Below, one piece after another: positions 8,614 to 37,219 of a stretch of DNA of 64,000 nt (the stretch's first letter is position 1; each line of letters opens with the position of its first letter). Made by a program: the position numbers and the translations under genes. The stretch comes from Epithemia pelagica (lineage: Eukaryota > Protista > Bacillariophyta), in the NCBI GenBank assembly GCA_946965045.2, contig OX337241.1, forward strand, positions 2,356,001 through 2,420,000. Direction: 5' to 3'. Below the pieces are notes generated by a model. The model ran no database searches. It was given only the letters and a program-made list of their open reading frames with translations, and was not told the origin of the DNA.

Positions 8614-8740
8614 ATGGCAACGGCCGCCACGACGAGTCCCACCATGACCACTCCAGTAGTAGTGCCTCCTCCTCCTCCCATGAAAAAGAATCGATTGCAA
8701 GCACGAGAACAAGTGGCCATGGCATGGCACCAACGACGTC

Positions 8741-8776
<36 letters not shown>

Positions 8777-11160: not shown

Positions 11161-11334
11161 CGAATAGAGAAACTGTGTGTGTGTATAGCAACAACAAGTA
11201 CCACTCAAACACAAAATGGCTTAGTATAGAATCTCCCATGTATATAGAACACTGTCATAAAATATCTAAATCGAGTGGCTCGGATCGAACGTGAGCCCGC
11301 TCTCGCTAATAAGTTTCGCCATGTATGTGCTGGT

Positions 11335-14724: not shown

Positions 14725-16784
14725 CAACCAAACCCGGGATGGTTCCCCGGGCTGCACGACATGATCAAGCAGCTCGTTTACACAGTATTAGTGACGATCC
14801 TTTTATCAAGTTACACTATGCTGTGCTACGGGCTATGGTGTCCTAGGTGCTACCACCTGGAGTCAGTCCTAGACTACGTCCAAAGGCTATGCGACTCCAT
14901 AGCGACCTCTCTCGCGACCAAAATCAAAGTGAAGAAGAAACGAAGAATCGACCATGGCCGGAGACGACGGAGAACTAACTATACAGGACTCCTCCGGGCA
15001 TTATGCATGGCAACGATACTGACTTCGACAACTGGACAAGTTACTCACCGAGCGGCCCACGAAGTTGGCTTTGATACCGACAGCAGGAAAGTCTTGATTG
15101 ACATTGCCCAACCGCGTCAATTACGAACGACATACAAGACTGCTGCACCAAACCAATCAAAATCAAACGAAAGGTCAAGGGAGTAGCAGGAACATATCAA
15201 CCAGATATATACGAGACGACGATACGATGGGATATCGAGGACGACGACGGCAAGATCCATACGATCACGCTCCCAAGGTCCTTCTACATCCCATCGACTC
15301 CAACCAAACTGCTTTCGCCCCAACATTGGGCACAAACAGCAAAAGATATCAAACCCTTGCCGAGAGGAACACGATGCGTGACGTATAGCAACGCTATCGA
15401 ATTGATTTGGGGGCAAGGACTCTTCAAACGGACGATTCCATTGAAACAACGAGGTTCAAATGTGGGTGAGTTTACGACTGCCCCAGGATACACAAAATAC
15501 GAAGCGTTTTGCAAAAAGGCAGGCACGACAATCCAACAAGAGGACAACAAGCCCTTGCTGGTCAACAACGCAAACCTCATTGAAGACGACGACGAATCCG
15601 TCATGGAACGGTCTCCATCAACAATGGACCAAGATGAGGGAGACGATTGGAGTATCGACGAAAATCACAAGAATCTCGACGACGAACAAAATGAACATTA
15701 TTTTCCAACAAGAGATGTACCGATGACTACCGAGTTCCTCATAGACCCCAGCGATACGGTACATGTGATTCCTAATGAAGAAGAGGTACTCGCCGAAAGT
15801 CCAACGCTAGAGTTACTCCGAACGCATCATAGAATGGGACACCTGTCGATGGCGAAAATCCAAAGCCTTGCACGACAAGGAGGACTCCCAAAGCGACTTG
15901 CAAACTGTAAGGTCCCAGTCTGTACGGCGTGTATGTACGGGAAAGCTACGCGACGTCCCTGGCGAATCAAAGGTCATCGTGGAACACTAGATACCATGAC
16001 GTCACCGGGTCAATGTGTATCAGTCGACCAAATGATATCAAAGACTCCGGGTTACATTGTGCATCTACGAGGGACTCCCACACGGGACAGATATAGGGTG
16101 GCTACGGTTTTCGTCGACCACTTCTCAGGGGTAGGCTATGTACACCTTCAACGGAGTACATCAGCAAAAGACACGATCGAAGCTAAAGAACGGTTTGAAG
16201 CTTGGGCAGACACTCACGGAGTCAAGATCCGACATTATCACGCCGATAACGGCATCTTTGCCGACAATAAATTCCGGGAAGCAGTACAAATGAAGAATCA
16301 ACGATTAACTTTCAGTGGGGTTAATGCTCACTTTCAAAGTGGCATGGCCGAACGACGTATTAGAGAACTACAAGAATCAGGAAGAACAATGCTAATACAC
16401 GCCCAACGACGCTGGCCTAGTACAGTGACGACGAACTTATGGCCCTATGCAGTCCGCTATGCCAACGACATGTTCAATGAGGCACCAATGAAGAAACACA
16501 AGGAAAAGACGCCAATGGAACTATTTACAGGTTCAACGGTAAGATTCAATACACGACTCGCACATACGTTCGGATGTCCAGCATACGTACTCGACAACGA
16601 ATTACAAAGCGGAACTCCAATTCCCAAATGGTCCGAACGAGCTCGAGTTGGCATTTTCTTGGGCTATTCTCCCCAACATGCAAGGACAATCGGGCTTATC
16701 TTATCCCTTTCTTCCGGATTGACGTCACCTCAATTTCATGTTCAATACGATGACCAATTTGAAACCATACGCAAAAGTTTTGGA
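14725..16784 (+). pseudogene. pol: Copia Pol 5' part (protease, GAG-pre-integrase, integrase); 1-nt frameshift near 15101; cut by the nested transposon
   Basis: GFDTDS..VLID protease motif, HHRMGH...CTACMYGK zinc finger, and VSVDQ/HADNG/AERRIRE integrase core. Confidence 0.9.
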
Positions 16785-16884
16785 CATCTAAGGAAGGAAC
16801 GGTACGCCAGTTTATGGCGGTTTAATTATCGATAAGAAAGCACCCCTAAGCGCATCCTACTAGAATCATCCGCGCGCAGGACAC

Positions 16885-17112
16885 GCGCACACCTACAAGA
16901 ACATGCGCACACCTACAAGAACATGCGCACACCTACAAGAACATGCGCATGGCCCTTCCTCACGTTATTACTAAAAATGTGCTTTCCAGAACCAGCAAGC
17001 GCATGACCCACATTTCACCAACTTCAACACCATGCACAGTCAAGAACCAATAGTCATCACATCCCTCCACCTTCATGCACAGTCAAGAACCAACAGTCAT
17101 CACATACCCTCC
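16885..17112. repeat. Left subterminal repeats: 20-bp unit x3 and ~42-bp unit x2
   Basis: gcgcacacctacaagaacat x3 at 16885-16944; catgcacagtcaagaacca...ctcc x2 at ~17030-17112. Confidence 0.85.
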
Positions 17113-17312
17113 TATGTATGCACTCATCCTTGATTGTGTCACATCACCATCATGCGCATTACTCCAGCATCAAGTGCAAGCAAGTTGAACACAGTGCATT
17201 TAACTAACACCATGCACACACTCCCACTAACAACCAGCGAATGAATGGAACACAATACATGTAGCTATATAGGAGTAGTATATGAAATGAAACCAATTGT
17301 CACTCTGATCAA

Positions 17313-19305
17313 TCACTGCCACGACCGTTTTCGTGGCCTTTTAGAAGGCCTTGTCACAGCATCATCATCTGCATACCCCATTCGAGAGCGATATTGCCCA
17401 TTGAGAAACATCATGAACCAGATACCGCGGTCGCCTGCTCTGTCTTCACGAGCGATTTTCTCTTCCATATCCTCAAAATAGTCCATACCATCCTCATTCA
17501 TACATCGACTTGAGTTCCAACTGCCTGAATATTTGAAGCGAGGATACCTTGCTGAGGATGTATCAATCATTTGATCAACACCATTTTCATTGTACCACCT
17601 TGGATTTAATTCAAATAGTTTCGCCTTGAAAGTGGTCTTGCCCATGTGAGTCCACACATCCCAGCAATCCACAAGGATGGTCAATATGAATGCCTCGTCA
17701 CTTGAAGTGAATAACTTCAAGGCCTTTTCGCAATGTTCCTTTCCCTGCTGCTCAGTGTGGTCACCAAAATTGAAATCAATCACGGTTTTATGCATATTCT
17801 CACCATAGACACATGGACCAAACAATTGCAAGAGATATGAATAGGCATAGTTGTCACACTTCTCTCCTCTCAATAACAGAAATTCTTCCAGGGTAGGCAT
17901 TGGCCCAAAGTCTTCACAGTCGTTCAAAAGGCATGGATACCTCCGCTGGAAATTACTGTCACGCCATAGATCAAGACCCACATGTTCTAGATTCAGCAAC
18001 AAATTATCTCACATCTCTTTATGAGAAGACGACATGATGAACCAACACATTCACTCTTCGATTGACACTTACTTATAAATGCTTTTCGCATGGAAGCCAG
18101 AACATTTGATCGTTTGCTTCGGAACTTGTCAAGCATATAAGGTGAATGTTCAATCCACCACTCCTCTTGTTGTTTTGCATCCGTAATGCCTTTGCCTTTG
18201 AAATAGTGCTCAGTAAAATATGTTTTGCCATACTTCCCCCAAAGACCATTCGGATCTGCCTTAGTATCTTCGGACATGGAGAAATACTTGACATAACGCC
18301 ATGCCACCTTCCGAACAAATGTATCAAAGAACTTCTCCGATACCACCTCAGGCTTTTTCTTCGGCTTTTGCTTCTTATTCTTGTCCTTTTCGACAGAACC
18401 TTTGTGTGTAGTGGATGTTACAATCGTACTTGTCGGGCAAGATGATTGATTATGGTGTACTGTTGTTGTCTGTGTTTCCTGTGCCAACTGATTTTGAATA
18501 TCGTCTTGTAGAAGAGTTTCCATCGCCTGATCAGGCCCTGTTGTTAGCAAAGTAGATGATGAAGATGACGACATATCCGAAAGGGAAGAAACGTCGTTAG
18601 CAAAGGTATCACCTGATGCATTCAACCCACAAACACCCCCGTCATTAGAGCCGTCTCACCGACAAATTGTCCTCCTCTATTTTGTGCATCTAACAACTTA
18701 CTGACAAGTCCTCCAGCAGGAAAATGTCTCTCATTAGGATCAAAATCATCTCCATCATACTCACTGGGTCCATTGCTCATATTCTGCAATGCTCGTTGCA
18801 TTTCAGGTCCAGTGAGAATATTTACACCGACGTCGTCCTCCTCCATGTTATTAACTGCCGTGTTTGTTGGTTGCGCAAAACCAGATGATGGTTGTGTTCT
18901 CAGCCCACCCTGTTCATTATTGCTATCATCTGCTGAAGTCACATCGGCTCCATCTCTTTCTGAATTTGTTGCCTGCTCCAAAAGATTACCACTCCCTTCC
19001 ACAGTTGTGCCTTCTTGTGCTTGTGCTTGATCGTTGTTCATCAAGATCTGTTCCTCTTCTTCCTCGTCATCAGAACTATCTTCTTGGAGTACTAAACCTC
19101 CATTGGCTGCTGCAATAAGAGCATCTTTGTTTGTAATTGTCCCGTCCTTGTTAGGAAGATTCTCTTTATTTCTTGTTGCCACTGCTGCCAAGATGCTTCT
19201 TCGTTGTCGTTCAACCTCTTTCTGATTACTTCCATAGTTTGCATTTCGGACTGCTAAGGGTCGACGCCTCGTTGGAGCTGCATTTCTGGTGGTGACTCCT
19301 GCCAT
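17313..19305 (-). CDS. Transposon accessory protein, 3 exons, ~605 aa, function unknown
   Basis: Exons 19305-18702, 18612-18073 and 17986-17313 with GTAAG/AG introns preserve frame (1818 nt). C-terminal SSDEAFILTILVDCWDVW and KYSGSW motifs. Confidence 0.7.
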
Positions 19306-19869
19306 CGTTTATCTTGGATGCTCCGTCTGATTTATGACAAGGATGTGAACAAGAGCAGGGTGACAACAAGACCTCTGATGGACAACCATTCAAATTCAAA
19401 CGCTGGAATGCTCCATGTTTGAATCATAAACTCCGTGTTTGAACGATGGTCCTTTAGAGAACGTATGAAGATGAGCATAGGTGGTTTCAAGTACATCATA
19501 CTTGTCAGATGGAACATTGGTGCATGGGTTTGAATGATTGTCATTTCCTTTCTAATGTCGACAGTGTCGGTATCCTCGGCATTGACACAGTGTTTGAATT
19601 CCAATCGCTGCTATCACCGTTGGTATCTAACCCGGCAGGCTGGATTGGATTAAGTAAATACACACGACCGTTTGAAAATATTATGATCCGTTCATGTACA
19701 TAAGCGATTTTCAGTCGCTTTTATGCACCAACGTCGGCCGATCCACCCAATGCGGAGAAATTCTGATATATGCCACAAGATTGACCACCGATGTCTCAAT
19801 TTGCAGAAATCGATTACAGAGCATTTTTCATTACAAACCAAAATCTAAAACCACCAGCATCGTACCATC

Positions 19870-22800
19870 ATGGGCCAGCGTCGTAAAGTAAAAAAGAAGT
19901 CGCGAAAGAGATGCTCAAATACAAGCCAACAAGAGGAGTCCTTCATATCCTTTCAAGTGTGTCGTTTCTGTCAATCACGTTTCGATGCAAGAGGAATCAG
20001 CCGTCACGAAACAGTTTGTGAATTGAAAATGAACACCCAAAGGAAATGGCCAAATGTTGGCGATGACAACAATGATTGTGCCAGTAATATGAATGCTGAT
20101 CCAATGAATATTGATATCATGGACGATGAAACCACTATTCCGCATGCTGACCCACCAAAAGCATACTATGTACCTGGTGATACAGATAATATTATTCTGC
20201 GCAACAGCAAGGAGTGCCCGGTTGATTTTCCTGCGTTCCTCGATAGAGATGGGAAGCAATTGAAACTTCATAAACACGATGCAGCCTTGGTCTCACTTAT
20301 GATGTTACTTCGGAAAGCTGGTTGCCCCAAATATTTGTACAATTCGATCCTGGCATGGTCGAGTGACACATACTCAAGATGCGGTCCTGGGTTCTTCCTG
20401 GACAACCATTCAAAGAGGAAAACGTTCATCGAAAAGTTTTCTTCCAAAGGTTTCAATTATCCCAAGGCCAAATTTTTCCCGGTACCAATGGAATTCACCC
20501 AAAAACAGGGTGTGGTTGTACCAGAGAGTGAGAAATCAATAACAACACCAGTATTTGATTTGATCAGTCAACTACAGCGTGTATTACAAGATCCCGATGC
20601 AACCAAGAAAGAAAATACGATCCTCGATGATGACGATCCGTATCGTCCATATGTTCCAAACAAGCACATCCAAAATATACAAGACGGAGAAGTATTTCGG
20701 AAAACAGTGGAAAAATATAGAGATGATCCAGATGCCTTCGTGGTTGGTCTTGTCTGTTATATGGACAAAACACATGCAACAGGGGATGGAAGATATACAT
20801 CGGAGCCTGTTGTAATGGTGCCATCTTTTCTAACGGAAACACAAATGAGGAAAGCAAGGCGACAGATCATCCTTGGGACTATTACAGACATGGAAAGAAA
20901 ATCATCAGCGGCAAAACATATCCTCGATAAAGGGACTCCTTGCCGAAATTATCATGCTCAATTGACTAAGATCCTCGAAGGTCTTGTCAGTATCCAAAAA
21001 CAGGAAGGTTTATGGATGAAACTACGTCTCCATGGGATTATCAAAGTTGTCCGTTTGATATTGCCAATGATTGTTGTCAAAGGAGACGGGAAGTCTCAGG
21101 ACAACCTTGCAGGTCGGTATGCCTCGCATCATCCAAGTGTTGGAAGACTATCATGGTGTTGCAACATTAAACCAAGGGATAGCAGATACCCATGGCATGA
21201 ATGTTCTTATATCAATGCTGCAAGTACATACAAAATGTGCTTGAATGCATTGGGTCTTAATGAAAATCGAGAAAAACTGACTGAACAGGATGTTGATTAC
21301 CAAGAGAGAGACAATGATACATTTTCGACTTTGACTGTTCCTACCTGTTTGAGCACATCGCAAGTAAGTCAAGAAAATAGCAGAGATGGAGGGGTCAATA
21401 CCCTTGTGTCAGCTGCAAAAACCCAATTGCATGACATGGGACAATATGCAGTCGATCTTTGTTTTTCCAAGGTTTACCTGGGTGAAGGAACCAATTCTGA
21501 ACATGGGATTTTCTCGGCCAGTAGTTGTGATGTTCTTCATACATTGAAATCTGGGATAATGAGATACATCATGATTGACTTTTTCACGTTGATGACAAAA
21601 ACTGAACGGGCCATGTTTGATTATGTCTACAATTCAATCTTTCGGGCAAGTAGACAGACTGTATTCTCGTATTCATCGAAACTTGGATATCCCGGAACAT
21701 CATTCTCGACCGGGATCAGTAACCTGTCAAAAGTAACTGCCAATGAGTGGGTTGGGATCATGTTTGCTTCAGCAGCTCTATGTGCCACTGCCAGAGGTCG
21801 CCTTATATTCGCGAAGAATATGGCAAAGAAATGGAACAAGGTGGTTGCGGAATGGAAAAAACGACAAGCAAAGCAAACATCCAAAACCACCAACAAGACA
21901 TGTCAAGCGGACTTGGATCAAGTGCAAGAGACAAGTGAACCTATTGCTGACAATGAGGATGATACTCCACCAGATGAAGAGTACGAACGTACACGTCTTG
22001 ATGATGATGATAGTGTTGACATTGATATCACAGCTGAAACTGTTTTTGATGATGACCCAGTTGCTTACAGGTCTATCTGGGATGTTGATGAGCGGGAACC
22101 ATACATAGACTTCCTGCATCTATTCGAGACTCTTTTGTGTTTCAACAGCTGGATTCGTATGGATACATTCTGGGAAACAGACCCTGACTCACAAGAAGGA
22201 CAAACAACAGCATCCAAGTCTCTCGAATCAGTGCGGATTTTGATGGATGGCATCAGGAGATATGCACCCAGGCTCGATAAAAAAGGCAAATTGATGTCCA
22301 ACGGGTGGATGATACCAAAATTCCACAATCTCATACACATTATACAACAGATTCAGAATTTTGGACCAGCACGACTGCTTGATGTGGAGTCAGAGGAAAG
22401 TAATCATAAGGAAATTGTGAAATTGAATGCAAAAACGGTACAGAAACGTGGAAAAGGAATTTTTGAGTCGCAACTTGCAGAAAATATCTGGTGGATGCAA
22501 AGCTTGGAAATGCTGCAGGAAGCAACAGGTCTTGAAGAAGATCATGTCACCTTTCTCCAGGAAGGGAAGTCGCCTTATGAAATAAGGAGAAAAAAGGGAT
22601 CCCAAAACCAACTCCCTACCACATCAACCTCGAATAGCCGTGGAACGGTCATAGTAGTATCCATGACCAGAGAAAAATGTTTGATTCCAGTACCTCACAC
22701 GAACGTACATACTTCTGGTGATAATCAAGACCAGTCATCAGATGAAATAGACAAGGATCTTCCGTCTCCATTGGGTATGTCGATTCAAGTTCCAGGCACG

Positions 22801-23727
22801 ACCAGAAAAGAACAAGACGGATCAAACCGAAACCAGACGAGTAGTGTACACAGGCGATTGACAGCAGCACCACACGAGGAGGATGTGGTATCAGTGAATA
22901 TCGAATTCCATTCCAAAACAAATCATGACATGACATTGCCACAGTTTTGTAATCACTTCTTTCGATTACATTACAAACGCTTTTTTCATCATATAGACGG
23001 GATGAGTGATGATCCAACAAATGAGACTTCAACCACACTGGAATTGTTTGGGAGCACAGAACTTAAGTTCGAAGACCCCAGGATAGGAAATATACGGGCT
23101 CATCCGAATTATCAAAGCGAGGGGCCATGGAGAGATAGGGTGATGGCTAAAGTTCCAAAGAAAAAAAGGAAACCTCTTGATGAGGTATACAACCAGCCTC
23201 TCGGAGAATTTGATACCATCCTATGTCAAACGATATGCTTCATTCAAATACCCATTACTCGAACAGACCACATACAAATGCAACCATCACCGGTATGTCA
23301 ACCTTCAACTTCACCCGAGATGACCCATGTCCTTCTCCGAACAACATATGTACGGAGTACAGCTGATATCGAGAAATCATCCGTTCTCTTTCAAAAATGG
23401 CGTAAGCGTTTTGACCTACATCGAATAGCTGAAATTGTCATGGTTCCACTCCGGAATATTGTTGAGGTTGTTGGTGTAGTGGATGAGAACCCAGAAATAA
23501 TTCAAGACCGTGATTCTATCCCAACATATTTCCATTCTTCACTTGAAAAAGATTTACTCCAAGAAGACAGTCGTAATTTGAGAAACTTTAGTGACAATGT
23601 CTGGGCCGTACGCAACATCAAAGAATGGGCTTCCGAATTCAATGAAAGTGCCCGTGACAATCTCGAGAAACGCTGTAATGAAATGAAAGAAAGATTGAAA
23701 CAATCCGTTAGCAATTCGACGTCATGA
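19870..23727 (+). CDS. Plavaka/CMC-type DDE transposase, 1285 aa
   Basis: N-terminal CxxC..HxxxC finger; YMDKTH (D1), GDGKSQD (D2), CDVLH (CxxH), IPKFHNLIH, ESEESNH (E) and RAHPNY...PWRD. Confidence 0.8.
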   Translation: MGQRRKVKKKSRKRCSNTSQQEESFISFQVCRFCQSRFDARGISRHETVCELKMNTQRKWPNVGDDNNDCASNMNADPMNIDIMDDETTIPHADPPKAYYVPGDTDNIILRNSKECPVDFPAFLDRDGKQLKLHKHDAALVSLMMLLRKAGCPKYLYNSILAWSSDTYSRCGPGFFLDNHSKRKTFIEKFSSKGFNYPKAKFFPVPMEFTQKQGVVVPESEKSITTPVFDLISQLQRVLQDPDATKKENTILDDDDPYRPYVPNKHIQNIQDGEVFRKTVEKYRDDPDAFVVGLVCYMDKTHATGDGRYTSEPVVMVPSFLTETQMRKARRQIILGTITDMERKSSAAKHILDKGTPCRNYHAQLTKILEGLVSIQKQEGLWMKLRLHGIIKVVRLILPMIVVKGDGKSQDNLAGRYASHHPSVGRLSWCCNIKPRDSRYPWHECSYINAASTYKMCLNALGLNENREKLTEQDVDYQERDNDTFSTLTVPTCLSTSQVSQENSRDGGVNTLVSAAKTQLHDMGQYAVDLCFSKVYLGEGTNSEHGIFSASSCDVLHTLKSGIMRYIMIDFFTLMTKTERAMFDYVYNSIFRASRQTVFSYSSKLGYPGTSFSTGISNLSKVTANEWVGIMFASAALCATARGRLIFAKNMAKKWNKVVAEWKKRQAKQTSKTTNKTCQADLDQVQETSEPIADNEDDTPPDEEYERTRLDDDDSVDIDITAETVFDDDPVAYRSIWDVDEREPYIDFLHLFETLLCFNSWIRMDTFWETDPDSQEGQTTASKSLESVRILMDGIRRYAPRLDKKGKLMSNGWMIPKFHNLIHIIQQIQNFGPARLLDVESEESNHKEIVKLNAKTVQKRGKGIFESQLAENIWWMQSLEMLQEATGLEEDHVTFLQEGKSPYEIRRKKGSQNQLPTTSTSNSRGTVIVVSMTREKCLIPVPHTNVHTSGDNQDQSSDEIDKDLPSPLGMSIQVPGTTRKEQDGSNRNQTSSVHRRLTAAPHEEDVVSVNIEFHSKTNHDMTLPQFCNHFFRLHYKRFFHHIDGMSDDPTNETSTTLELFGSTELKFEDPRIGNIRAHPNYQSEGPWRDRVMAKVPKKKRKPLDEVYNQPLGEFDTILCQTICFIQIPITRTDHIQMQPSPVCQPSTSPEMTHVLLRTTYVRSTADIEKSSVLFQKWRKRFDLHRIAEIVMVPLRNIVEVVGVVDENPEIIQDRDSIPTYFHSSLEKDLLQEDSRNLRNFSDNVWAVRNIKEWASEFNESARDNLEKRCNEMKERLKQSVSNSTS

Positions 23728-23922
23728 TCATAATTTGCCTCTATGGGGGGTTGTCACATACCAGCACTCCCCTCCTAATCTCCCCCCCAAACGTACGCGA
23801 GCCGACCAATTCAACTCAGAGTGTCACACACAAATTGGATGAAATAGTAGATACTTTCCATCGTTTTCCAAAAGTCATCCTCAGTCTTCAGTCAGCAAGG
23901 CTATTCTACTCCTCTTCAAACA

Positions 23923-25050
23923 ATGATCAACCCATACAAATCGAGGAAGAAAACAGTTCCACCCTTGGTGGTCAAACCAAACTTTCCAGTCACAAAGATA
24001 CCTCCATCTAATGAAGAAATGATGATCAACCCATACGAGTTAGAGGAAATAGAGACCCCCATGGTCAAAACGCACTCTCCAACCCCGAAAACTTGCGACG
24101 GTGAACATGACAAGAAGCCACCGCCTGCGTCCAAATCAATAATCAAATGTCATCCACTTCCGTCTTCTAAGCTTGATACCAAGGAAGAAGAGGAGAAGAA
24201 ACTTCCACCAATCAAGCGCCCATCGTATCAGTTGATCCCAAACCCATATAAGAAGAAGCTCAAGGTTGCCGATCCATCTACTATTCCAATCTTGCTATTA
24301 CATGACTCTCCTCCAATGTGTAAACCAAGAGCAAACCGAGATAAGCTGCATCTCGAAGTTATTCGGTTCACTGAGCTTGTCAATAAAATCTATGGATCCA
24401 ATGATGTTCCCCCAGAGCCAGTCTGTCCTTGGTGTTTTGTAACCGACAACCTTTCAACAGATCGTAGACTTACAGGAAAATGTTGGCATCACTTCGGTAA
24501 ATCTCTCTCATGTGCCGATTGTTGTTATGGTTGTGGAGTGCCCATGAACGGATGTGATTCAGGTGGGAATGAACGTTGTTGCACCGAAGCCCTGTATATC
24601 CATGATTCGATGAATATCACACGCGAAGAATCAGACATAAACAAGGTTCCATTGGTGTGTAAGTCTTGCTTAAGGCCATGCAATTCTTATTCAGAATGCG
24701 TCTTCTCGCATGGTTGTTGGAACTCTTGCAACAAGTACTTCGTCTGGCGATTCTGTCATATTGCTGGACGGGCGTTGGTGTACTCACAATTGAAGCCCAA
24801 TTGCAAAGGACCAGGCACGATTCCCAAACATGCACAGGATATTATCAAAAACGCAACAGAGTTGATGTACAACGAACTGCGAGATCCGATGGAGTCTTCT
24901 CAGTACACATCTCCATTTTGTCATGTTCTTGACCAAGACTCCTGGTCTAAATGGCTTGTCTCCATGTCTTTCGGTCGATACTACAATTACATGCCGTTCT
25001 TCCGTCATTGTTACACAGCCTTGATGTCTTCATCGAAACCATTGTATTAA
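23923..25050 (+). CDS. Cys-rich transposon cargo protein B, 375 aa
   Basis: Intact ORF with NPY repeats, many CxxC pairs, NKYFVWRFC and WSKWL...NYMPFF. Confidence 0.65.
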   Translation: MINPYKSRKKTVPPLVVKPNFPVTKIPPSNEEMMINPYELEEIETPMVKTHSPTPKTCDGEHDKKPPPASKSIIKCHPLPSSKLDTKEEEEKKLPPIKRPSYQLIPNPYKKKLKVADPSTIPILLLHDSPPMCKPRANRDKLHLEVIRFTELVNKIYGSNDVPPEPVCPWCFVTDNLSTDRRLTGKCWHHFGKSLSCADCCYGCGVPMNGCDSGGNERCCTEALYIHDSMNITREESDINKVPLVCKSCLRPCNSYSECVFSHGCWNSCNKYFVWRFCHIAGRALVYSQLKPNCKGPGTIPKHAQDIIKNATELMYNELRDPMESSQYTSPFCHVLDQDSWSKWLVSMSFGRYYNYMPFFRHCYTALMSSSKPLY

Positions 25051-25111
25051 ACAAACTCTCGACTTCTTCGAAAGGCAAACTGGGAACAGATAACAAGATT
25101 TATAATATATG

Positions 25112-26068
25112 TCAATGATCATTACCATCCATATTTCCACGTTCCAACTCCGCCGTCTCAGCCATTCTTTCGAGACAATTACGGAAGCACCTGACAAAGA
25201 GTGGCATGTAGTTGCGAAAACCAGCCGTAGAATGAGGCAACGAAAGCAACCATACTGCCCATGTTTTATCAGATGCTCGGGCATAATCGTATGGGGCACA
25301 ATCGTTATCATCAAAATAGAAACGGGATCGCAATTCCTCACGCCAAACGCTGCGGACAATAGTAAACATTGGCCAGGTGATTTGACGGGGAAAGTTCACA
25401 CCATCGTAGAAAGATGTTATTTGAAAAGTACGCGCCACAATATGGCGTATGAGCATACAGAACTGCCACACGAAGTGCTTGTTCTCAGATTCCACACAGA
25501 CACTGCATGAATCCAAATCTGGTTGTGGAATCCCAAAAGGTATTGAGCGTTCGGGAATTCGGAAACATTCCCTACACACCTGACAATGAAATGTTGGATG
25601 CCTGTGGCGGTGACATAAGTTACAACGCATCAAAAAATTCTGCTGCCAGATAACTGAATAATCGAGATATGCCGCACGTGTTACCACTGTAGTATTTCCA
25701 TGATTGCACTGGTGATGTGGTGTGGGACGACCAAGGATAACACAGTATGGACAGAGTTTCTCACCTCTAAGCATTTCGTCCACCAACCGTTTGAATTCAG
25801 TCTGGATTTCATGACCGACACGCATCTCTTCTCTGAGTTGTTCTATGACTTGTGGTACATCTTCTTCTTCATTATCGTAATCAAAAAAGATCCTCCCAGC
25901 GTCCCTGAAACAAGGCCGATCATTCACTTCCAAGTTCCTGTCGTTGATCGCCCGCATTTCTCGTCGTCGTCTACGTTCCCGAACATAAAAATCTTCTTCC
26001 TCCGATTCTTCTTCCTCCGATTCATCTCCCGATTCATCCTCCGGTTGGTCCTCTGGATTGTCAGCCAT
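25112..26068 (-). CDS. Cys-rich transposon cargo protein B', paralog of 23923-25050
   Basis: First ATG at 26068. Acidic N-terminus, CxxC pairs, NKHFVWQFC and WAVWL...NYMPLF. Confidence 0.65.
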   Translation of the reverse strand: MADNPEDQPEDESGDESEEEESEEEDFYVRERRRRREMRAINDRNLEVNDRPCFRDAGRIFFDYDNEEEDVPQVIEQLREEMRVGHEIQTEFKRLVDEMLRGEKLCPYCVILGRPTPHHQCNHGNTTVVTRAAYLDYSVIWQQNFLMRCNLCHRHRHPTFHCQVCRECFRIPERSIPFGIPQPDLDSCSVCVESENKHFVWQFCMLIRHIVARTFQITSFYDGVNFPRQITWPMFTIVRSVWREELRSRFYFDDNDCAPYDYARASDKTWAVWLLSLPHSTAGFRNYMPLFVRCFRNCLERMAETAELERGNMDGNDH

Positions 26069-26660
26069 TCTGTTTGCAGTCTCCTTCTCTTCGTTTTGCT
26101 GTGAATGCAAATACCTGTACTTGTTGCTTCTTCTTTGGATTTTTATGAAACCTCCGCTGTCATATGAACGAGAGTTCAACTGGAAATAGATCCACGGATA
26201 ACCGATCGGTCGCGTTTGTGTACAGAAATCGTCACACTATACTATTCACTGTGAGTATTACCACATACTGTGAGGATAAGTGTAATCATTCCCAACATGG
26301 TCGCGTTTCACTCGCTGGGCTGACCTATCGGTGTGGCTTTGCAAAATTCCATGGACATGGAACAATGACATGCTTCTAGAACTCGAATGGCTCCAAATTT
26401 TCGTATAGACCATTTGGGTATCATTTGCATGGACGGTAAAGGCTCTGAATTTGTCTATCATCAACCAAAAGACTTGCAATAGACCCTACCGGTGTGGTGT
26501 TGCCGTCGTCCCAAAATTCTATGGACATGGAGCAAAGACATTCTTCTAGAAATCGAATGGCTCCAAATTTTCTAGAGACCCTTGGGGTATCATAGGCATT
26601 GATTGATGGTAGGTAGTGGTTTTGCTGATAGGTGGGCATGGTCTTGTATATTAGAAATCT

Positions 26661-29600
26661 CTATTCGTCACTAGATTTCTGGCCCGACGCCAAGCCTCCA
26701 ATTTCATGAGAATTGTCATCCTCGTTTTGTGTTACGGTAGCACTCAAAGATCTTGCATTTGTGCTAAAAAACCAACCAATCGTATGATTTCCCACATTCT
26801 TGTCTTTCGGTGGTATGGAGTGTGTATGGACAGATGTTCCATGTCTGATGATTCTCCCGTCCCATGCGATCGCAATGCCATGGAATAACCGGATACAAAG
26901 CCCATGATAAGTCTTGTCCTTATGCTTTATAAGGACATTGGGAAGGACGAAATACCAATTGTTGGTGCTGCCTGGGTTGGTTTCTGTCCAGATTGTAAAG
27001 GACACTGATGCATCATGAATATCATAGTGGCTTGCATTCATCAAATCGCAACTCGAAATGATGGATGATGACACACCCCTTTCGTTTCCTCCCAATTCGT
27101 TTGGGACATCCAAACCGAAGTTTGTTTCCAGGTGTCTGAAAGCCGATAACACACCAGGGAATTTCCTCTCACAGAATCGCCGAACACCTCCACAGATTTT
27201 TGGCAATATATTCATCATGTTTGGAGATATTTTGAAAAGTTTGTCAGAAAAGAATGTACTTCTGCCACCCGTTTTTGTGCACACACCAACAGATGTCATA
27301 GTCCCCATATCACCATGGTTACACCTTGCATTGGCTGATCTCTCTAGTGTACCGCTCTGCGCGAAGTGACATGACCTCTTGTGTAACAATGAAAGTAGGT
27401 TTTTGTCATTTTGCTGAAGTGTTGTCACTTTGACATGGCTGATGGTTTCGTTTTTACCCGCGTACCCACGTGTCCGAACAATGAATGTTGTATCTTCTCC
27501 GGTATCCCTTACATCAAACAGGAGCGGACGGACCGAAGTATCAGGCGGAGGGGACAGGTTTCTATACAATGCTCCATGGACGTACTTTCGGCATCCAGTC
27601 TTGTTAGCACTGGCTTTATTCAGCAGTGTTTCACGATACCACACTCTAAGAGAATGTTGGTCATTTGGTGTCATTTTTGGTCTGGACTTTTCACTTGTGT
27701 AATGATCAGGGGCCCAAAGTGGAGAACCACTTTCAACATCAGACGCTTGGTAGCATTCATGGACAACTCTCTTTGCACTTTGTGTCCAATCAATACACCA
27801 ACACTTGACAACCTTTTTGAGGAATGCCCCACCACTTGGTTGGCCGTCGGAATGTCGTAAGCGCAGCCAGGATATAGGTAGTGCTACCAAAGATGAAGTG
27901 CATTCCGATGTTGCATACCCAGTATTCATTATCATTGCCGAAGTATAAAAAATACCGGCCAAAGGGATGATAACGATCACGTCATGGAAAATATGGTCCA
28001 TACAATCATCACAGTTTTTCTTGGATGTGCGACAATGGAAGATTGTATCGTCAAACGCAGACCACACGGTTTTGGGGTATTTCCGATGTCCCTTATGTCG
28101 TTGACAGCGATTCAGTACACATTCTACCAAGAAGGCACATGGAGACCGGGTTGTTAAGAACTTCGGGTCACATTCTGTCACATGAAGCTTGTTGTCTTCG
28201 AAACAACAATGGCTTGCTGGATCTTCCGTCACCTCACCAACCATGTCTTTCATTTGTTCGTATATGTTAGGTAATTTTCCCATGATTGTTTGGAGGTCTG
28301 TTGGTGTGATGTCGTAGTCTTTCAGAACCTTTGTATAGCAGATGCCGAACATTCTCCGATCATCATTGCTACTGAGACAGAGTGATAGTAAGTCGCGTAG
28401 TCTTTTTGCTACCTTGTCCATGTCAGGAATTCCAAAAAAACACATTTCTGTATGATCGGATTCATTTGGTTTGGAGAATTTTGTCGTCAAATGGCTAGGT
28501 TTCTCAGCCTGTCGTCTCTTATACTTCTTCATCGTTTCATGTGTTAGTGTCAACTTCGATAGGCCCTCTTGTCGTCGTTGCTTGTTCGTGGGTAGTCCCC
28601 TGGATGAACCAATGGTCTTACATTCTTTTCTTTTCCTTTCCGGTGAAGTATTCTGTTCGTCAGTATCGTCATGATTACCGTGTATTGGAGACTTGTGAAT
28701 CTCCTTCGTACCTCGTTCGTCTTGTATGCGCTGATCCGTTTGTGTTGTCGTGTTGATGCTACTTCCCTTGTTATGGTCGTTTTTTGTCATTTGGTCATCG
28801 TTGTTCTTGTTGCTACCTTTTTGTTTGTCTGTACTATCCTTTCCTTCTTTGGTTTGTGTCGCATCATCTTGGTTGACACTGTCATTGTGACAGCTAGACG
28901 GATTATCACTGTCAGGTGTGTTGTTGGCATTCTTAGACCCGTTCTCTCCAGAATTTCCGTGTTGTTCGTAAGCAACAATCTCTTGCTTGCCACATTCCTT
29001 GCCCTTTTGTTTGTCTGTAGAACCGTTGCCATCTCTGCTTTGTATCTCTTCTCCTTGTCCACATTCATCTTGGTGACTGGAGGTTGCTTTCTGACCGCTC
29101 TGTCTGTTCCGATCATCCCTCTCCTGATTGTCCTTGGAATTCCAACCAAGTTTGGATAGGCCATCCTGCCCTCCACGACTCGCTGTAGTGTGATGAATGT
29201 CCTTTTCTCTCTCTCTACGAGGTGATTGATTTGGTTGACTATTACCTCTATCAGTTGAGGGACGGTTAGGCTCTCTCTGACGGGTACGCCTAGAATGATC
29301 GTTGTGTCCAGGATGACTGTCTCTAAGTGACAAATGGTGCCTGGAATGTTCGTTGTATCCAGGGAATCTCTCCCAATCCATCGGATCCATCGGATGTCGA
29401 TTAGACCATTGATTGTGGCTATCTCTATATACCGAATGGTGCCTTGTATGTTCTCTCGAATGTTCGTTGTATCCAGAGAATCTCCTCCAATCCATCGAAT
29501 GTCGATTAGACAATTGATTTTGATTATCATGTCTTCTTTTTCTATCCCGGTAAGTGTTTTCCATGATTTGATCTCTTCTCCCTCTAGACTCGTCTTGGTG

Positions 29601-32600
29601 GTTATCATGGTATCCATGTTGGTCTTGTTGCTCAATGACTCCTCTTCTAGTTTGTTGGTTATCTTGATCGAAATGTGAATGACGAGACCCATGATAATCC
29701 GATGTATTAGATCCTCTCGATCCTGGATGATCATCATTGAATCGATTCTGTCCATGCTTACAATACACTGGCCTGTCATGTTCAGGTAGCGAACCCCACT
29801 CATTTGTTCTGGGGCTTCGAGTTGTCGACAGGACGTTGTTCTGATTCCGTCCACCCCACAGCCCATATGGATTCTCTCTCTTGTCCTTGGTTCTTTCGTT
29901 ATCATGTTGGGTTTGCTCTGTTCTATGTCTTTCTTCAGGCAGCTCACTCCGGTTACCCCAATTTGCAGGCATTGCAACGGAACGTGATGAGTTATTTCCT
30001 CCCCATTGCTGGTATTTAGGCTTCTCACCCTCTGGTGACTGATAGATTGCTTTGTGTTCAGAAGGATGAGTATATGTTCTTTGAACAGAACGTGTCATAG
30101 GACAGAAGTACAATAGACTTTGAATATCCTGGCTGCACACCATACATGTGTTGTGGCCCCGCTGCATCCAATCTCCAACACATTCCCGACAAAATGTATG
30201 TCTACAAAGAAACAGTTCGCAATCCACTTTTCTGGTCATACAAATCGAACAAACCTCGGGCTTGTATTTTGTCTCAACTCCTCTTTGTTCTAGTGTTGAT
30301 GGCTTGTTACTCACGGGTGATTTTTTTGATGATTCTTCAGGGCGTCCCTCAATCGTAGTTGTAGTGTCTTTGACTGTTTTCCTATGTCCCTCTTCAGGGA
30401 ATCCCTCGCTCGTAGTTGTAGTGTCTTCCGCTGTTTTCTTGTGTCCCTCTATCTTCTCCGCACCAAACATGTGGATGTTACTCTTGATCTTTTGTCCACA
30501 CTGGGGACACCATACATTATGATACTTGAACCGTATTCGTAAGCAATTTCCGTGAACCAGATGTCCACATGGGATGAGGGTACAGACTTCGCTGTCTGTA
30601 TCTGTTTTCAATGCCCTGTTACAGCATACACAAGAATCTGGACAATATACAACGGTCGGTAGCAATCGATTTATATCTCTCTTGGAAAGTTTGGAGTCAA
30701 GTAACACCTCCTTGGGTTCTAATCCCACCCTCGGGCACGGTATGAACAATATGTCACCATCCGTAGTCCACGTCTCTGAACACCCACCATCAGATAGATC
30801 GACGTTCTCCTGGTATTCGTATTTATCGGTACCACGTGAAAACCCCACTTCAACAGGATCGTCGTCGCTGTTGCCATCGAAATTGTCAGGTCCCAACACC
30901 AAAGGAGAAATCGAATTGCCTTCAACAGCATGCTCTAGTCCTCTCGAAAATTCATTATTGTACCGTATTTGATTACTCGAAAAACAATTGGATATCGTCA
31001 TACTCTTGTCTATCTGACCTTCTTTCCGACCCGGGTTTGGTCGACTACTCATTATGTTTCCAAGCATTCTGATCACAATAGCTTGTGGCATTGGCTTTGG
31101 AGTATCCTTCTTAGGTTCTGGCATTTTCACAATGCGATATCGCCACTTGTTACATTCCTTGTTTGTATCATGTGTTGTTTCATCTTCTTCCACTAATGAT
31201 GGGTCATAACATAGACTGACAGGCGGGGCACCTTTTGACGTATTGACCAGGTCCCATTTCCGTAGTACATGACGCGTCGTTCCTTCCCAGTATTGGTCTG
31301 ATCGATTATGTATTGGTTCGTAGATATGAAGTATCTTTTTGTCGATTTCGAAAGCCAATAAAGCTGGGTCGCTGACATCAGTTGCTGTTGTCAAGGCAAT
31401 GATCGCCAATATCAGTGTGTTCGGATCCTGTTGTCTCCATGATGACATAGGAATTTTCTTAGGAAATGGGTTCCTGTTTGCTTCATCAAATGTTACTTTG
31501 TCAACATATACTAGGTTCTGATGGTTGTGATGGACCATCAATTTCAAACAAGTATAGAAAGACTCAATCGGCATGCCCGTCCTTGAAGTGTTGTAGCAAA
31601 GATCTCTCCGACGATGTCTATGTGGGATATGCAAAACACGCGTTGTAGGGTCCTGGTCATTCATCAACCCACTGTAAGACATGCATAGTGTGCACCTAAA
31701 TAATGTCTTGATTTCGACATGCGTGTTGTCCTTCCCCATACTCTTAGCATACTGGGTTGCTAGCTTCATGGCCGACTTGATGTTCTCGTTGTTTCTGTTA
31801 GTTTGTTTTTCCGCGAACTTGTCCAAGTAACCGTCACCAATGTTGTCGATTGATTCATTCGAGTCCCATGAGTCTTTTCTTCTCTTCTGGTTTACTATAG
31901 GATCAAGAACGTGTGGAATTTCAATGAAAGGCTGTGGTACCACACCATCACCTGTCTCCTCAATTCCCTTGTTTATGGAAGCACAACGTCTCTAAGACAA
32001 ATAGATCAATCATTTTTGAGATTGTCTAATCCTTCTCGATTCTTGGCAAGTCGCTCGAACATCTTACCTCGTTGTCTGCGGTTTTTTCATTGTCGTCGCT
32101 TATAATCTTCCTGACCTCTTCCACACGGTCTGATTTGAGGGCAACTTGGTTCGACGTTGTAATGGAAGTTGGTAGTACTTGATCCTTTTTCTCGTCAGTA
32201 GGATCATTACCAGCGACGACCTTCTGTCTCTTTTTTGCCGGCGAGTCTATACTCCGACGTTGCACGGCAATTTCTTTCGATTTCCTGGCAGACAGTACCT
32301 CTTGTTTTTCTATATAATGCAGTAGATCGTAGAACATACCGCCATCGTCTCCGTTTCTTCCATATTGTACCAAAGAATCTCTTTCTTCAAGGTACATCTT
32401 GAACCATGTGTCAGGCATCGTATACAACAGTGCTTTCTCCATTTGGATATTGGAAATCACGTCCATGTTCTCGTCCGATGTCGATTCTGAGATGAAACGG
32501 TGTATGGCCACCATATGTTCGATAACCCATGCGATTTTACCAACAGGTACGAGACGCGGTTTCCTGTAAAGGGAGGAATCATCTAGAAGGTATCGTTTCA

Positions 32601-33192
32601 ATGCTTCTCCAATCCCACCGATCCCCTTGCGTGTCTTCTTAGAGACTAAGCCATGAGAGGAAAGAAATCTGATAATGGTTTGTCTCAGATTCTCAGCACC
32701 GTCTATCACTGTCGTCCCAAATGCCTGATTCCAAATATTGGAAACAGGACTGTAGAGAGTCTTTTTGAACAACAGTCGAGCAACCATTGGAGTCAACTTG
32801 TCATCATCATCCATCTCGTTCTTAATTCTTGTGAAACAGAAAACGGAGTGACAGATGATATCTTGGAATGCAGGCGAATAACAGATTGGTAGGAATATCT
32901 TCACATAATGGCCGTCATGTGGTACCTCCACTGTTGTCCATTTTCCTGATTTGTCTTGGAAAACACTTTCATACCAATTGAGGACACTTTCGTATGTAAT
33001 GGGCATAATACCGGTGTAGTGAGATTCCTCGCTTGTGTGTGTTCGAAGTGTATGATTGGTACCAGAAACAGTCATAGTCGACACGTCCTTTCTTTTGTTT
33101 CGCACTTCATCATTCATTGAAGAAGGGTCACCAGGATTCTTGGCGGTCGGTGGTTTTTTGTAGCGAGGGCCCTTGATGCGGTTGCCCGCCAT
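26661..33192 (-). CDS. ~2151-aa protein with two RING fingers and a C-terminal TET/JBP-like 2OG-Fe(II) dioxygenase domain (2 exons)
   Basis: Exons 33192-32068 and 31991-26661, joined by a phase-0 GTAAG...TTAG intron. RINGs: CVCC...CGHLVHGNC...CPQC and CSIC...CRHTFCREC...CMVC. Dioxygenase: ASHYDIHD...WYFVLPN...LFHGIAIAWDGRIIRHGTS. Confidence 0.7.
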
Positions 33193-33214
33193 TTTGTACT
33201 TGTCACGATGCGCT

Positions 33215-34560
33215 TTTTGTGTAGCGTCTTTGTTTCAACAACAACAACAACAAGGGTAGTCGAGGAAGCGCTTTAATTGTAGCGTCTTTGAGACAACCTT
33301 GTGTACTTGTCTAATCAGTAAAAAGTGTGCGCTGAATTGTGTAGCGTCTTTGGTTTGGTCCTGAACTCTGGTGGTAACAAAACAACAACAAAATCGAAGG
33401 AATACACTACGACGCGCTTTATGTGTAGCGTCTTGTTCGTTGTGATCCAACAATCGGTGCCAGAATTTGCTACTCCAAAACCAGGGGTTGGTTGGTTGTC
33501 CAAGCAATCTCGCGACAAGAATAGAACAGAAGCAACTGGCTACCACCGTGTCACACTGCTTGCTTTGGGTCTGTTCTATTCAAGTCCGAGTATCACGAGG
33601 ACAGGAGGGTTCTTGATAAACAATCTAACAGATAACCCGAAACCGCTTCAATTGTAATAGCGTGATTGGAGTGAAGGACAGAGCTGAGTGAAACAAGCAA
33701 CAATCAGACAGATGCCCCAAGCCGCTTTAATTGTAGCGTGGTGATTGGAATGGCAGAGCTGCAAGATAGTGCAAGTGTCAAAGATAGGACAAATGTCGAC
33801 AATATTTCGAATGCTCTGGTGGTCGTTCTTCTTCTTGGGTTCCTCTTCTTCTTGTTTTCCTGTTGTAGCGGTTTTGGAGTGAAGGTCGTGGTTGAAAGGA
33901 AGCAAGCAACAATCAGACAGATGCCCCAAGCCGCTTTAGTTGTAGCGTGATTGGAATGGCAGAGCTGCAAGATAGTGCAAGTGTCAATGTCTCGAATGCT
34001 CTGGCCGTGCTTGAGTTCCTCTTCCTCTTCTTCTGGTGCAGCGGTTTTGGAGTGAAGTGTTGTAGCGGTTTTGGAGTGAAGGTCGTGGTTGAAAGGAAGC
34101 AAGCAACAATCAGACAGATGCCCCAAGCCGCTTTAATTGTAGCGTGATTGGAATGGCAGAGCTGCAAGATAGTGCAAGTGTCAATGTCTCGAATGCTCTG
34201 GCCGTGCTTGAGTTCCTCTTCCTCTTCTTCTGGTGCAGCGGTTTTGGAGTGAAGGTGGCTGAAGAGGAAGCAAGCAACAAAAAGGTGGCTGAAAAGGAAC
34301 CAAGCAACAATCAGACAGATGCCCCAAGCCGCTTTAATTGTAGCGTGATTGGAATGGCAGAGCTGTTAGGTTGATGAAAGAAGTTGGATAGGTGAAAGGA
34401 TTGAAAAGGGAATCTCGGCAGAGAGAAAGCAAGCAACAAAAAGGTGGCTGAAAAGGAACCAAGAAACAATCAGACAGATGCCCCAAGCCGCTTTAATTGT
34501 AGCGTGATTGGAATGGCAGAGCTGTTAGGTTGATGAAAGAAGCTGGATAGATAATGGGAT
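33215..34560. repeat. Right subterminal tandem array built on TGTAGCG motifs and a ~55-bp core
   Basis: caatcagacagatgccccaagccgcttta(a/g)ttgtagcgtg...gattggaatggcagagctg occurs about five times; tgtagcg occurs more than ten times. Confidence 0.85.
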
Positions 34561-35246
34561 TGAACAGGGGAATCTCGATAGCGTTGGGTGATCGATTGTT
34601 GTTGTTGCTGCTGCTGTTGTTGTTGTTTGTTGTGGTGTGTTGGGTGGAGGTGGAGGGAGATGAATGAGCATCGATTCTGGTGGTCGTTGATTGTTGAATG
34701 ACTAGTATGCTAAGTTGTTCGGTTTTGTTCGATGGATCAGAGTGTCGAGTTGGTAATCCCCGCGGTTTGGGTGATTGGGAAGGAGGATCCATCTGAGACA
34801 TTCTTTGGGACATCCATGTGCGTCAGTCTTTCTGGCAGCTGCTGTGTGATGTGGTGGGAGTGGAAATTCGTGATTCAAAGGTGAGGGGACAGACGCTTGC
34901 GCATGAGGGTTGCGTCATGCGCGTCTCGGGGGGGTCGAGCGCGCCAGATAGTTGTAGTGCGCATTATCGGAGTGTGGCGCGCGTTATTCGTGGTTTGATC
35001 GCGGGCTTGTGCGCATTAAAATTGTGGCATGCGCGTGATAGTCAGCTCGATCTCTAGAACTAGCTAGAGAAATGTGCATTGTTAGACCTAGATTTGCAGA
35101 TTTAGTTGGGAAAGCAGGATTATAGTTAAAAACTGCGCATATAAAAATAAACTGCGCATAAAAAATTTTAATTCGGCGAATTTTTTCTAGAAATTCGCTT
35201 TTGGGGGTGGAAATCAAGCGCCGGGGCCCATTTCCCTCCTTAGATG

Positions 35247-37219
35247 GAGAGGCCCAACCAATATCTCAATGGCAGTATAAGGCAGGGTTCACAAAATCCA
35301 GACCACGCATGAGGGAGAATCAACCACGCGTGGAATTCAGAAGTACAACGACGTCATCCCGACGTGAGACCGACGTTACGATACCCGAAGACAGGGACCA
35401 AACTAACGATGCTAACCCGCCAATGAAAGAACGAGAAACTATGCCAGAGCATGAGGGAGCTAGGCGGTCCCAACGTACTCCTCGTCGAACACAACGATAT
35501 CAAGACTACTTGACTTCGCTCCAAGAGCCCGAAGACGCGATCGGAGAAGTAGCTATCACAGCTAAACCAACTGTGACAGTCAATACCGCTCAAGCTAACA
35601 GCAATCCAGATGTTATGTACTGGCATGAAGCGATGAAACAAGAGGATCGAGCGGAATTCATAAAGGCAGCACAGAAAGAAGTACAAGATCATAGCGATAA
35701 TGGGCTATGGGAGGTGGTCAAGCGAAAGGACATTCCGAAAGGAGCGCTAATCTCCCGAGGAGTGTGGAGTTGCGTCCGAAAGAGAAGACTAAAAACTAGA
35801 GAAGTCTACAAATGGAAATCCAGATTGGCATATGATGGGTCCATGCAAGAAAAGGGGGTTAACTATTGGGAAACCTACGCTCCCGTGATTCAATGGCCCG
35901 TCGTGAGATTCATCCTGACTATGGCACTCACACAAGGATGGCACATCAAACAGGTAGATTATGTGCTGGCATATACTCAAGCAGTCGCCGAGACTGATAT
36001 GTATATGGAAGCGCCGAAAAGCTTCACATTCGATACAAAAGGAAACCAGCGAGCAGAAGACTACGTCCTCAAGATCAAGCAAAATTACTATGGGCAGAAG
36101 CACGGTGCCCGAGTCTGGAATCAACACCTCGTGGAACGACTTAAGCAAGTCGGTTTCCAACAAAGTGCACACGACGAGTGCCTCTTTTATCATGGTAAAT
36201 GCGTATACATTTTGTATACGGACGATTCATTATTGTTGGGTCCTGACAAAGAAGAACTCGACCGGTTGATTGTTACAATGGAGAATAGTGGTCTGAAGAT
36301 GACCTATGAAGACGGAGTCAACGATTTTCTTGGGGTCAACATCGACAGAAAAGAGGATGGCACCATCCACTTGACTCAACCACATTTAATTGACTCAATC
36401 CTCCAAGATCTTCACCTTGCCGACGAATCGACCAAGAAGAAAGAAACACCGGCACCAACCACAGTACGCTTGAGACAAGACCAAGACGGAAAAGCATTTG
36501 ATCACCATTTCCATTACAGGTCGGCGATCGGGAAACTCAACTTCCTGGAAAAGAGCACGAGACCAGATATTAGTTTCGCCGTCCACCAATGCGCTAGATT
36601 TTGCGAAAACCCAAAAGCAATTCATGGGAAAGCCGTCAAACACATAGCACGTTACCTCGCCGGGACAAGAAAGCAAGGAGTGATACTAAAACCCGACACC
36701 ACGAAATCTTTCCAAGTGTTCGCTGACGCGGACTTTGCTGGCAATTTTAACAAGCTCGACCACCCAAACAAGGACATGGCTCGGTCTCGAACGGGATTTG
36801 TGGTCTTCTATGCAGGTTGCCCCATCCTCTGGCAATCAAAACTGCAGTCAGAGATAGCCTTATCAACCACAGAAGCAGAGATCATCAGTTTGTCACACGC
36901 ACTACGTACCGTCATTCCGTTGATGGCCATCACTCGTGAGATGAAGGATTTGGGAATCCCTATTCTCTCTACGACACCCAATATACACTGCAAGGCCTTC
37001 GAAGATAACAGTGGTGCAGTCGAACTTGCAACGATATACAAGTACAGACCCAGGACACGGTATCTGTGCACCAAGTTGTTCCATTTTAAATCTTTTGTGG
37101 AACGAAAAGAGATCGAGATTCACCCGTGCGCGACAGACGATCAGACCGCGGATATCTTCACTAAATCGCTCAACGAATCATCGTTCGAGAAACATCGCGA
37201 GAGTATACAAGGATGGTAA
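35247..37219 (+). pseudogene. pol: Copia Pol 3' part (reverse transcriptase, RNase H)
   Basis: KSRLAYDG, QVDYVLAY, YGQKHG and LYTDDS (RT); FADADFAG, LSTTEAE, EDNSGA and ADIFTK (RNase H). Confidence 0.92.

Follow-up and report, generated by a model that had tools for sequence, protein, structure and literature searches.

Plavaka transposons are already published, as are TET-carrying Plavaka and giant Plavaka loaded with cargo genes. TET-carrying PlavakaB families occur in Agaricales fungi (Kojima 2025, PMC12730594). PlavakaB, the only Plavaka group with TET genes, has CATCA..TGATG termini and generates target-site duplications of 2-3 bp, the duplication being 2 bp in PlavakaA and B, or 3 bp in PlavakaB (PMC12730594). 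Fungal Plavaka carry just one accessory gene, and the giant Plavaka of the red alga Bostrychia moritziana, at 17.4-19.1 kb, contain the accessory genes PAG1-3 and tandem arrays beside an accessory gene for a 2-oxoglutarate (2OG) oxygenase; these red-algal accessory genes are found on Mutator-type elements too (10.1101/2025.02.11.637652). TET/JBP genes have also been linked to KDZ transposons in basidiomycetes (Iyer et al. 2014, as cited in PMC12730594), a link that is shared as a concept with the element described here, although the KDZ transposase superfamily is unrelated. A literature search returned nothing linking Plavaka to diatoms, and likewise nothing linking TET/JBP transposons to diatoms. 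In this study, we analyzed a 64,000-nucleotide stretch of the diatom Epithemia pelagica (contig OX337241.1, positions 2,356,001 to 2,420,000; hereafter the window), in which an 18,462-bp insertion at window positions 16785-35246 very probably belongs to a young family of DNA transposons within the Plavaka lineage (CMCT clade), as a member that is full-length and apparently autonomous; the nearest described type is PlavakaB.

The element is one unit, inserted in the pol gene of a young Copia retrotransposon with a 2-bp duplication. Its termini are 15-bp terminal inverted repeats (TIRs), complementary at 14 of 15 positions and beginning CATCTAAGGA. The left TIR (CATCTAAGGAAGGAA, 16785-16799, + strand) is the same in all 16 left ends read, and the right TIR (reverse complement CATCTAAGGAGGGAA) occupies 35232-35246 on the − strand. 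The dinucleotide GA lies immediately outside both ends (16783-16784 and 35247-35248), in agreement with the reconstructed empty site. Excision of the element and one GA in silico, joining 15357-16784 to 35249-37219, yields one pol frame with a single terminal stop. Moreover, a 40-nt pattern of the empty site, containing one GA, is present at 12 other places in the genome with 0-2 mismatches, compared with none for a control pattern. The restored frame and the 12 empty sites therefore identify sister Copia copies that are unoccupied, and fix the ends of the element and its 2-bp duplication to the base.

The interrupted Copia (12956-37707, + strand) measures 6,290 bp without the insertion and is bounded by long terminal repeats (LTRs) of 461 bp at 12956-13416 and 37247-37707, which have TG..CA ends, differ by 2 mismatches and are flanked by GGTGT as a 5-bp duplication. 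A gag_pre-integrase domain is encoded upstream of the insertion and RVT_2 downstream; the target thus has the TG..CA LTRs, the 5-bp duplication and the integrase preceding RVT_2 that define Ty1/Copia elements. Because the host LTRs differ at only 2 of 461 positions, the insertion must be younger than an already very young Copia. A sequence-only reading made earlier on this DNA had proposed an 18.5-kb element with exact ends in pol, a GA target-site duplication and an insertion later than a Copia with nearly identical LTRs, all of which agree with these results; the 15-bp TIR starting with CATC that it described is correct in its start and length, but the repeat is not perfect. Two direct repeats of 4.1 kb (8678-12779 and 42751-46883; 93.5% identical and 34 kb apart) bracket the Copia together with the insertion, and could represent a segmental duplication or else the long ends of a nested element of even greater size.

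To define the family, the 60.5-Mb assembly of 23 contigs (in which the window is C17:2356001-2420000) was searched with the terminal 300 bp of the element, giving 27 left-end and 27 right-end matches. Pairing these ends by contig and strand resulted in about 23 two-ended copies of 3.6-20.3 kb, comprising eight of 18.0-18.5 kb, one of 20.3 kb and others of 3.6-17.9 kb. Six of the eight long copies are 98.5-99.7% identical to the window copy over the first 10 kb, the part compared. The short copies are internal deletions with differing breakpoints, as expected from interrupted gap repair after the excision of cut-and-paste elements. The outermost 25 bases are invariant save for single substitutions at one or two internal positions. 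The 2-bp flanks are identical in 13 of the 14 readable pairs, against a chance of 1/16 for each, and comprise GA (three copies), TA (three), AG (two), AT (two), TG (two) and CA (one). Of 20 flanks, 16 have a purine as the second duplicated base; no target-site consensus besides this was found in the same flanks. The transposase frame is open in 7 copies (1292-1293 codons) and the RING-TET frame, described below, in 8 (1757-1776 codons). The genome-wide TIR search, copy number and duplication consensus that the sequence-only reading had put forward as checks thus gave about 23 copies and 2 bp in 13 of 14, and its proposal of recent activity is borne out by the six near-identical copies, the seven open transposase frames and the young Copia target.

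The transposase (19870-23727, + strand) is a single-exon protein of 1285 amino acids with an N-terminal C2HC finger (C31, C34). Its placement was approached through relatives. Searches against ESM Atlas position it beside clusters in which PF18759, Plavaka, is the sole Pfam family (score 0.98, 226 of 256 features); among 30 hits, 15 clusters have Plavaka as their only common Pfam family and 8 more have Plavaka together with DUF6830. A word-indexed search retrieved four proteins, namely the transposase itself (53 cluster members), relatives at 51% and 39% identity, and P0004, which shares 25% identity with the window transposase (expectation value, E, 1.7e-40), matches PF18759 at 2.9e-5 and belongs to a cluster that includes a sequence of the diatom Attheya sp. 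CCMP212. A profile built from the four proteins matched 4122 of 1.84 billion representatives at E<=1e-3, and 838 at E<=1e-30. We sampled 35 relatives from the profile matches at E<=1e-73, all with about 19-27% identity to the window transposase: 20 of them match PF18759 (E<=1e-3, with 4.6e-14 as the best), and none matches a different transposase family. The three residues assigned as the DDE triad (D299, D406 and E843) are invariant across the 35 relatives, as are C431, C445 and H557 in the same alignment, and H819 and H823 are kept in at least 90%. The window transposase has both H557 and the H819-x3-H823 arrangement, an H(3)H motif; where it has CC, close relatives have CxC. Sequence searches against PDB (phmmer and profile hmmsearch) gave nothing useful for the transposase, and no likeness to RAG1/Transib came from them. 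Across four gap-free copies, whose comparisons are not independent, synonymous and non-synonymous differences stand at 56:39; because this exceeds the ratio of about 1:3 expected without constraint, the transposase appears to be constrained. The Lanisha lineage was also considered and set aside as a moss lineage.

The largest cargo gene lies on the − strand and is predicted to encode a protein with two RING fingers and a C-terminal dioxygenase. Two open reading frames (ORFs) of 388 and 1760 amino acids (33192-32026 and 31943-26661) lie head to tail and are predicted to form one spliced gene of about 2,150 codons, in which exon 1 (32068-33192, 375 codons) is joined in frame to exon 2 (26661-31991, 1776 codons open) by the removal of a 76-nt intron at 31992-32067. 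The GTAAGA donor of the intron is at 32067; its acceptor, TTGTCTTAG, ends at 31992, and the AG of this acceptor forms part of the stop codon bounding the downstream frame at the 5' side. Both splice signals are retained in 11 of 12 other copies. The joined model was checked for frame and stops, and homology searches were run for each exon. The RING fingers correspond to residues 438-488 and 565-609 of the 1760-residue ORF (30117-30632, − strand). They were the only domains recovered by a direct Pfam scan of all ORFs in the element down to E 10, and the excised RING piece matches zf-RING_2 at 2e-10. The last 379 residues have no Pfam match and no sequence match in PDB by phmmer or profile hmmsearch.

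Within this C-terminal part, a domain at 26664-27800 (− strand) has the character of a TET/JBP-like 2OG-Fe(II) dioxygenase. It has 17 homologues at 27-54% identity, and the HxD...H triad formed by H1639, D1641 and H1701 (numbered on the 1760-residue ORF) is invariant in 19 homologues. One homologue matches PF20515 (Tet-like) at 0.0014, and one of the ESM Atlas clusters neighbouring the dioxygenase is rich in Bacillariophyta. We generated an AlphaFold2 model from the homologue alignment, which shows a beta-rich core with a predicted local distance difference test (pLDDT) score of 77.6 and a predicted template modelling (pTM) score of 0.81. The best PDB matches of the model in Foldseek are TET2 (1e-9), CMD1 (3e-8) and CcTet (9e-7), and VIA-align ranks TET2 highest (Z 18.3 over 294 residues), followed by CMD1 (15.1), NgTet1 (14.3) and CcTet (13.8). 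As modelled, the dioxygenase is TET/JBP-like in both fold and metal site. The TET-like domain forms a large multi-copy family in the genome. Further TET-like groups at 33-39% identity have frames of 614-651 codons (e.g., C5:847564-931741, C10:104652 and C7:2655910); no Plavaka transposase paralogue was reported near them, and they may ride other transposon types.

The remaining cargo consists of gene 1 and two genes for Cys-rich proteins. Gene 1 (17316-19305, − strand) consists of three open segments that adjoin one another in three different frames (19305-18625, 18655-17996 and 18008-17316) and are probably spliced; the first junction alone allows 31 in-frame GT..AG combinations, and therefore no splice model was chosen. 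Its last segment is constrained, with synonymous and non-synonymous differences at 17:5 and paralogues 35-51% identical in sister families. Cys-rich protein 1 (375 amino acids, 23923-25050, + strand) and Cys-rich protein 2 (355 amino acids, 25112-26179, − strand) are distant paralogues, matching at E 1e-8 over their C-terminal 112 residues. Neither these two proteins nor gene 1 contained a recognised Pfam domain in scans to E 10. All frames are open in the window copy, as the sequence-only reading had stated in counting five undamaged genes; the count itself depends on the 388- and 1760-residue ORFs being one spliced gene, since the ORFs alone give eight open segments rather than five.

The same five genes recur elsewhere in the genome. 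Six-frame genome searches with each gene located a diverged set, in the same order and orientation, at at least nine loci that each span about 22 kb (e.g., C3:475535-498061, C17:1186503-1208217, C16:2999736-3017500, C7:1603312-1626021 and C6:3108071-3130289). Identity to the window proteins is 60-63% for the transposase, 48-49% for the dioxygenase, 42-45% for Cys-rich protein 1, 37-39% for the last segment of gene 1 and 29-30% for exon 1. A third set at C13:2723223-2746602 and C6:1761981-1783568 shows identities of 49-51%, 57-65%, 77%, 53-70% and 38-39%. The genome thus contains a minimum of two more Plavaka-type families, about 22 kb in size, in which these five genes keep their order, with protein identities of 29-77%. 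As judged from this synteny, the cargo is ancestral to the lineage rather than a local capture, and the whole set of five genes has diverged in parallel with the transposase. The self-contained gene set and cargo-rich family envisaged in the earlier reading hold in these sister families, and its counter-proposal, that the internal genes are single-copy host genes captured only here, is refuted by the diverged loci. At one locus on C3, an open frame of 2730 codons spans three transposase-like matches in tandem.

Several observations weigh against the assignment of the element to Plavaka with a TET-like cargo, and three rival explanations were considered. The window transposase itself has no Pfam match, even at E 10, and P0004, the best single link to PF18759, scores 23.9 bits against a gathering score of 26.3. 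The C(2)C motif reported for the clade is not recognised in that form, the two invariant cysteines lying 13 residues apart. The termini read CATCT..AGATG, which agree with the CATCA..TGATG of PlavakaB at four of five bases and have T as the fifth. One 14-kb copy (C16:3130006-3144168) is flanked by a 4-bp duplication, ACTC, which may reflect an occasional 4-bp staggered cut or chance. For the cargo, PF12851 (Tet_JBP) is matched neither by the dioxygenase nor by 18 homologues, and for the acidic first segment of gene 1 the ratio (13:40) gives no indication of constraint. An ordinary EnSpm/CACTA element, or a CMC element of the Mirage or Chapaev type, is the first rival: Mirage elements also make 2-bp duplications. 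In addition, a Transposase_21 cluster is one of the 30 ESM Atlas hits of the transposase, and Plavaka and EnSpm transposases are recognisably similar (PMC12730594). The termini are CATC and not CACTA, however, and the duplication is 2 bp and not 3 in the 13 copies noted above; neither PF02992 nor any other transposase model besides PF18759 is matched by the 35 relatives, PF02992 is absent from the window transposase, and the Plavaka-bearing clusters dominate its Atlas hits. We consider this rival quite improbable. The assignment to Plavaka is supported by a transitive link through the relatives, joined by the 2-bp duplication and the CATC..GATG termini, and in this respect the Plavaka/CMC identity given in the sequence-only reading is upheld.

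The other two rivals concern the cargo. The 18.5 kb could be composite, with several nested mobile elements, or host genes that were captured, lying by chance between two ends, and an accidental and local cargo; the large size of the element, the four of five genes without a recognised family and the paralogy of two genes would fit such an origin. Against it, the eight copies of 18.0-18.5 kb share their ends and differ in their flanks, at the nine or more other loci diverged paralogues of every cargo gene accompany those of the transposase with order and orientation unchanged, and no lone high-identity copy of a cargo gene stood out, with the reservation that not every match was assigned to an element; this origin is hardly credible. 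A more serious rival is that the dioxygenase is a generic 2OG oxygenase, such as an AlkB/FTO-like repair enzyme, an RNA demethylase or a protein hydroxylase, which has no role in DNA methylation, so that the cargo serves transposition or something unrelated to silencing. Besides the missing PF12851 match, the identity of the dioxygenase to TET structures is only 9-13%, AlkBH3 (the best non-TET chain, Z 11.2), FTO and PHD2 (about 10) also align to the model, and the substrate of an enzyme is unreadable from its fold. Conversely, among the chains listed, those of the TET/JBP family (TET2, CMD1, NgTet1 and CcTet) outrank every other 2OG enzyme, with 222-294 aligned residues versus 170-218, Tet_JBP is the common Pfam family in 24 of the 30 Atlas clusters neighbouring the dioxygenase, and TET genes with Plavaka are documented in fungi (PMC12730594). 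We regard the generic oxygenase as unlikely.

Both ends of the element carry subterminal repeats, as the sequence-only reading had reported. The left subterminal region (16850-17158) contains a 20-bp unit repeated 3.5 times (16881-16949), a 43-bp unit repeated 2.2 times (17031-17123) and a (T)GCGCA cluster, and the right one (34898-35166) contains five TGCGCA and a 19-bp unit repeated twice (35130-35166). TGCGCA, a palindrome, is found 4 times within the left 370 bp and 5 times within the right 350 bp, compared with 2 in the 17.7-kb interior, and these motifs sit inside the 20-bp, 43-bp and 19-bp repeats. The number of 20-bp units varies among copies, many left ends aligning over 280 rather than 300 bp, and could mark sub-lineages. 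A further array of 197-bp and 159-bp tandem units (33159-34577, + strand) covers the 5' end and upstream region of the RING-RING-TET gene. All 12 TGTAGCG heptamers of the window are located on its + strand at 33159-34504, where 2.9 would be expected in the whole 64-kb window. Inverted repeats were sought in this array and none was found, the repeats being direct. The array may be a protein-docking or regulatory site.

These features suggest a working mechanism. The transposase would bind the CATC termini and excise the element by DDE cut-and-paste; the transposase, which has the N-terminal C2HC finger, or an accessory protein could also bind the subterminal TGCGCA clusters, as in En/Spm. Reinsertion would follow a 2-bp staggered cut that shows almost no preference for sequence. 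5-Methylcytosine on the element or nearby would be oxidised by the RING-RING-TET protein, whose RING fingers may act on a chromatin protein, and the element would thereby withstand silencing through methylation; the candidate docking or regulatory site is the TGTAGCG array preceding the gene for this protein. Given the fold and the precedents in fungi and red algae, we put the chance of a counter-silencing role, with the TET-like enzyme oxidising methylated bases in or close to the element, at slightly short of even. A broader and considerably more speculative proposal, which we think unlikely as a whole, is that the five genes form a self-contained epigenetic counter-defence cassette that co-evolved with diatom Plavaka transposases, in which the RING-RING-TET protein would be brought, directly or with the help of gene 1 or the Cys-rich proteins, to the TGCGCA clusters and TGTAGCG array of its own element, where it would oxidise 5-methylcytosine and ubiquitinate a silencing factor. 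If true, this would be a dual DNA-and-chromatin anti-silencing device, undescribed for any transposon.

Compared with the known systems, the element resembles PlavakaB in the PF18759 matches of its transposase relatives, its 2-bp duplication (2-3 bp in PlavakaB), its CATC..GATG ends and the TET/JBP-type dioxygenase it contains. It differs in its diatom rather than fungal host, in the fifth terminal base (T instead of A), in its 18.5-kb length and five genes, in a transposase too diverged for the Pfam model, and in a dioxygenase that is the C-terminal domain of a predicted protein of about 2,150 codons with two RING fingers. With the red-algal Plavaka it shares the size class, the combination of a Plavaka transposase and several conserved accessory genes, and a 2OG oxygenase domain encoded beside a tandem array. 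Unlike those elements, it yielded no N6-adenine methylase or SET domain in Pfam scans; the partner of its oxygenase is a pair of RING fingers, with no ParB-like domain detected by Pfam in the N-terminal part, and its array consists of direct, TGTAGCG-bearing repeats instead of inverted repeats. En/Spm (CACTA) elements belong to a related DDE clade and likewise have short TIRs and, near either end, clusters of short subterminal repeats; they too encode more than one protein and have non-autonomous derivatives formed by internal deletion. They are distinguished by CACTA termini and a 3-bp duplication, as opposed to CATC and 2 bp, by PF02992, which is unmatched here, and by two proteins made through alternative splicing, in contrast to separate genes. 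The Arabidopsis VANDAL Mutator elements with the anti-silencing protein VANC offer a functional parallel, in that a DNA transposon carries a factor against DNA-methylation silencing, which for the present element is inferred; their transposase superfamily is unrelated, and VANC is no dioxygenase.

The conservation of five-gene synteny across diverged families indicates that the cargo has been under long-term selection with the transposase. For annotators of this genome, the five-gene set explains dozens of "orphan" multi-copy genes. The near-identical copies, the seven open transposase frames and the deletion derivatives provide a natural series for testing whether the TET-like protein protects the element from methylation. 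In diatoms such as Phaeodactylum, which can be transformed, transposons are methylated, and the anti-silencing question is therefore experimentally tractable in this group. The family would extend both traits, TET carriage and giant cargo, in combination, to a third distant lineage, the stramenopile algae.

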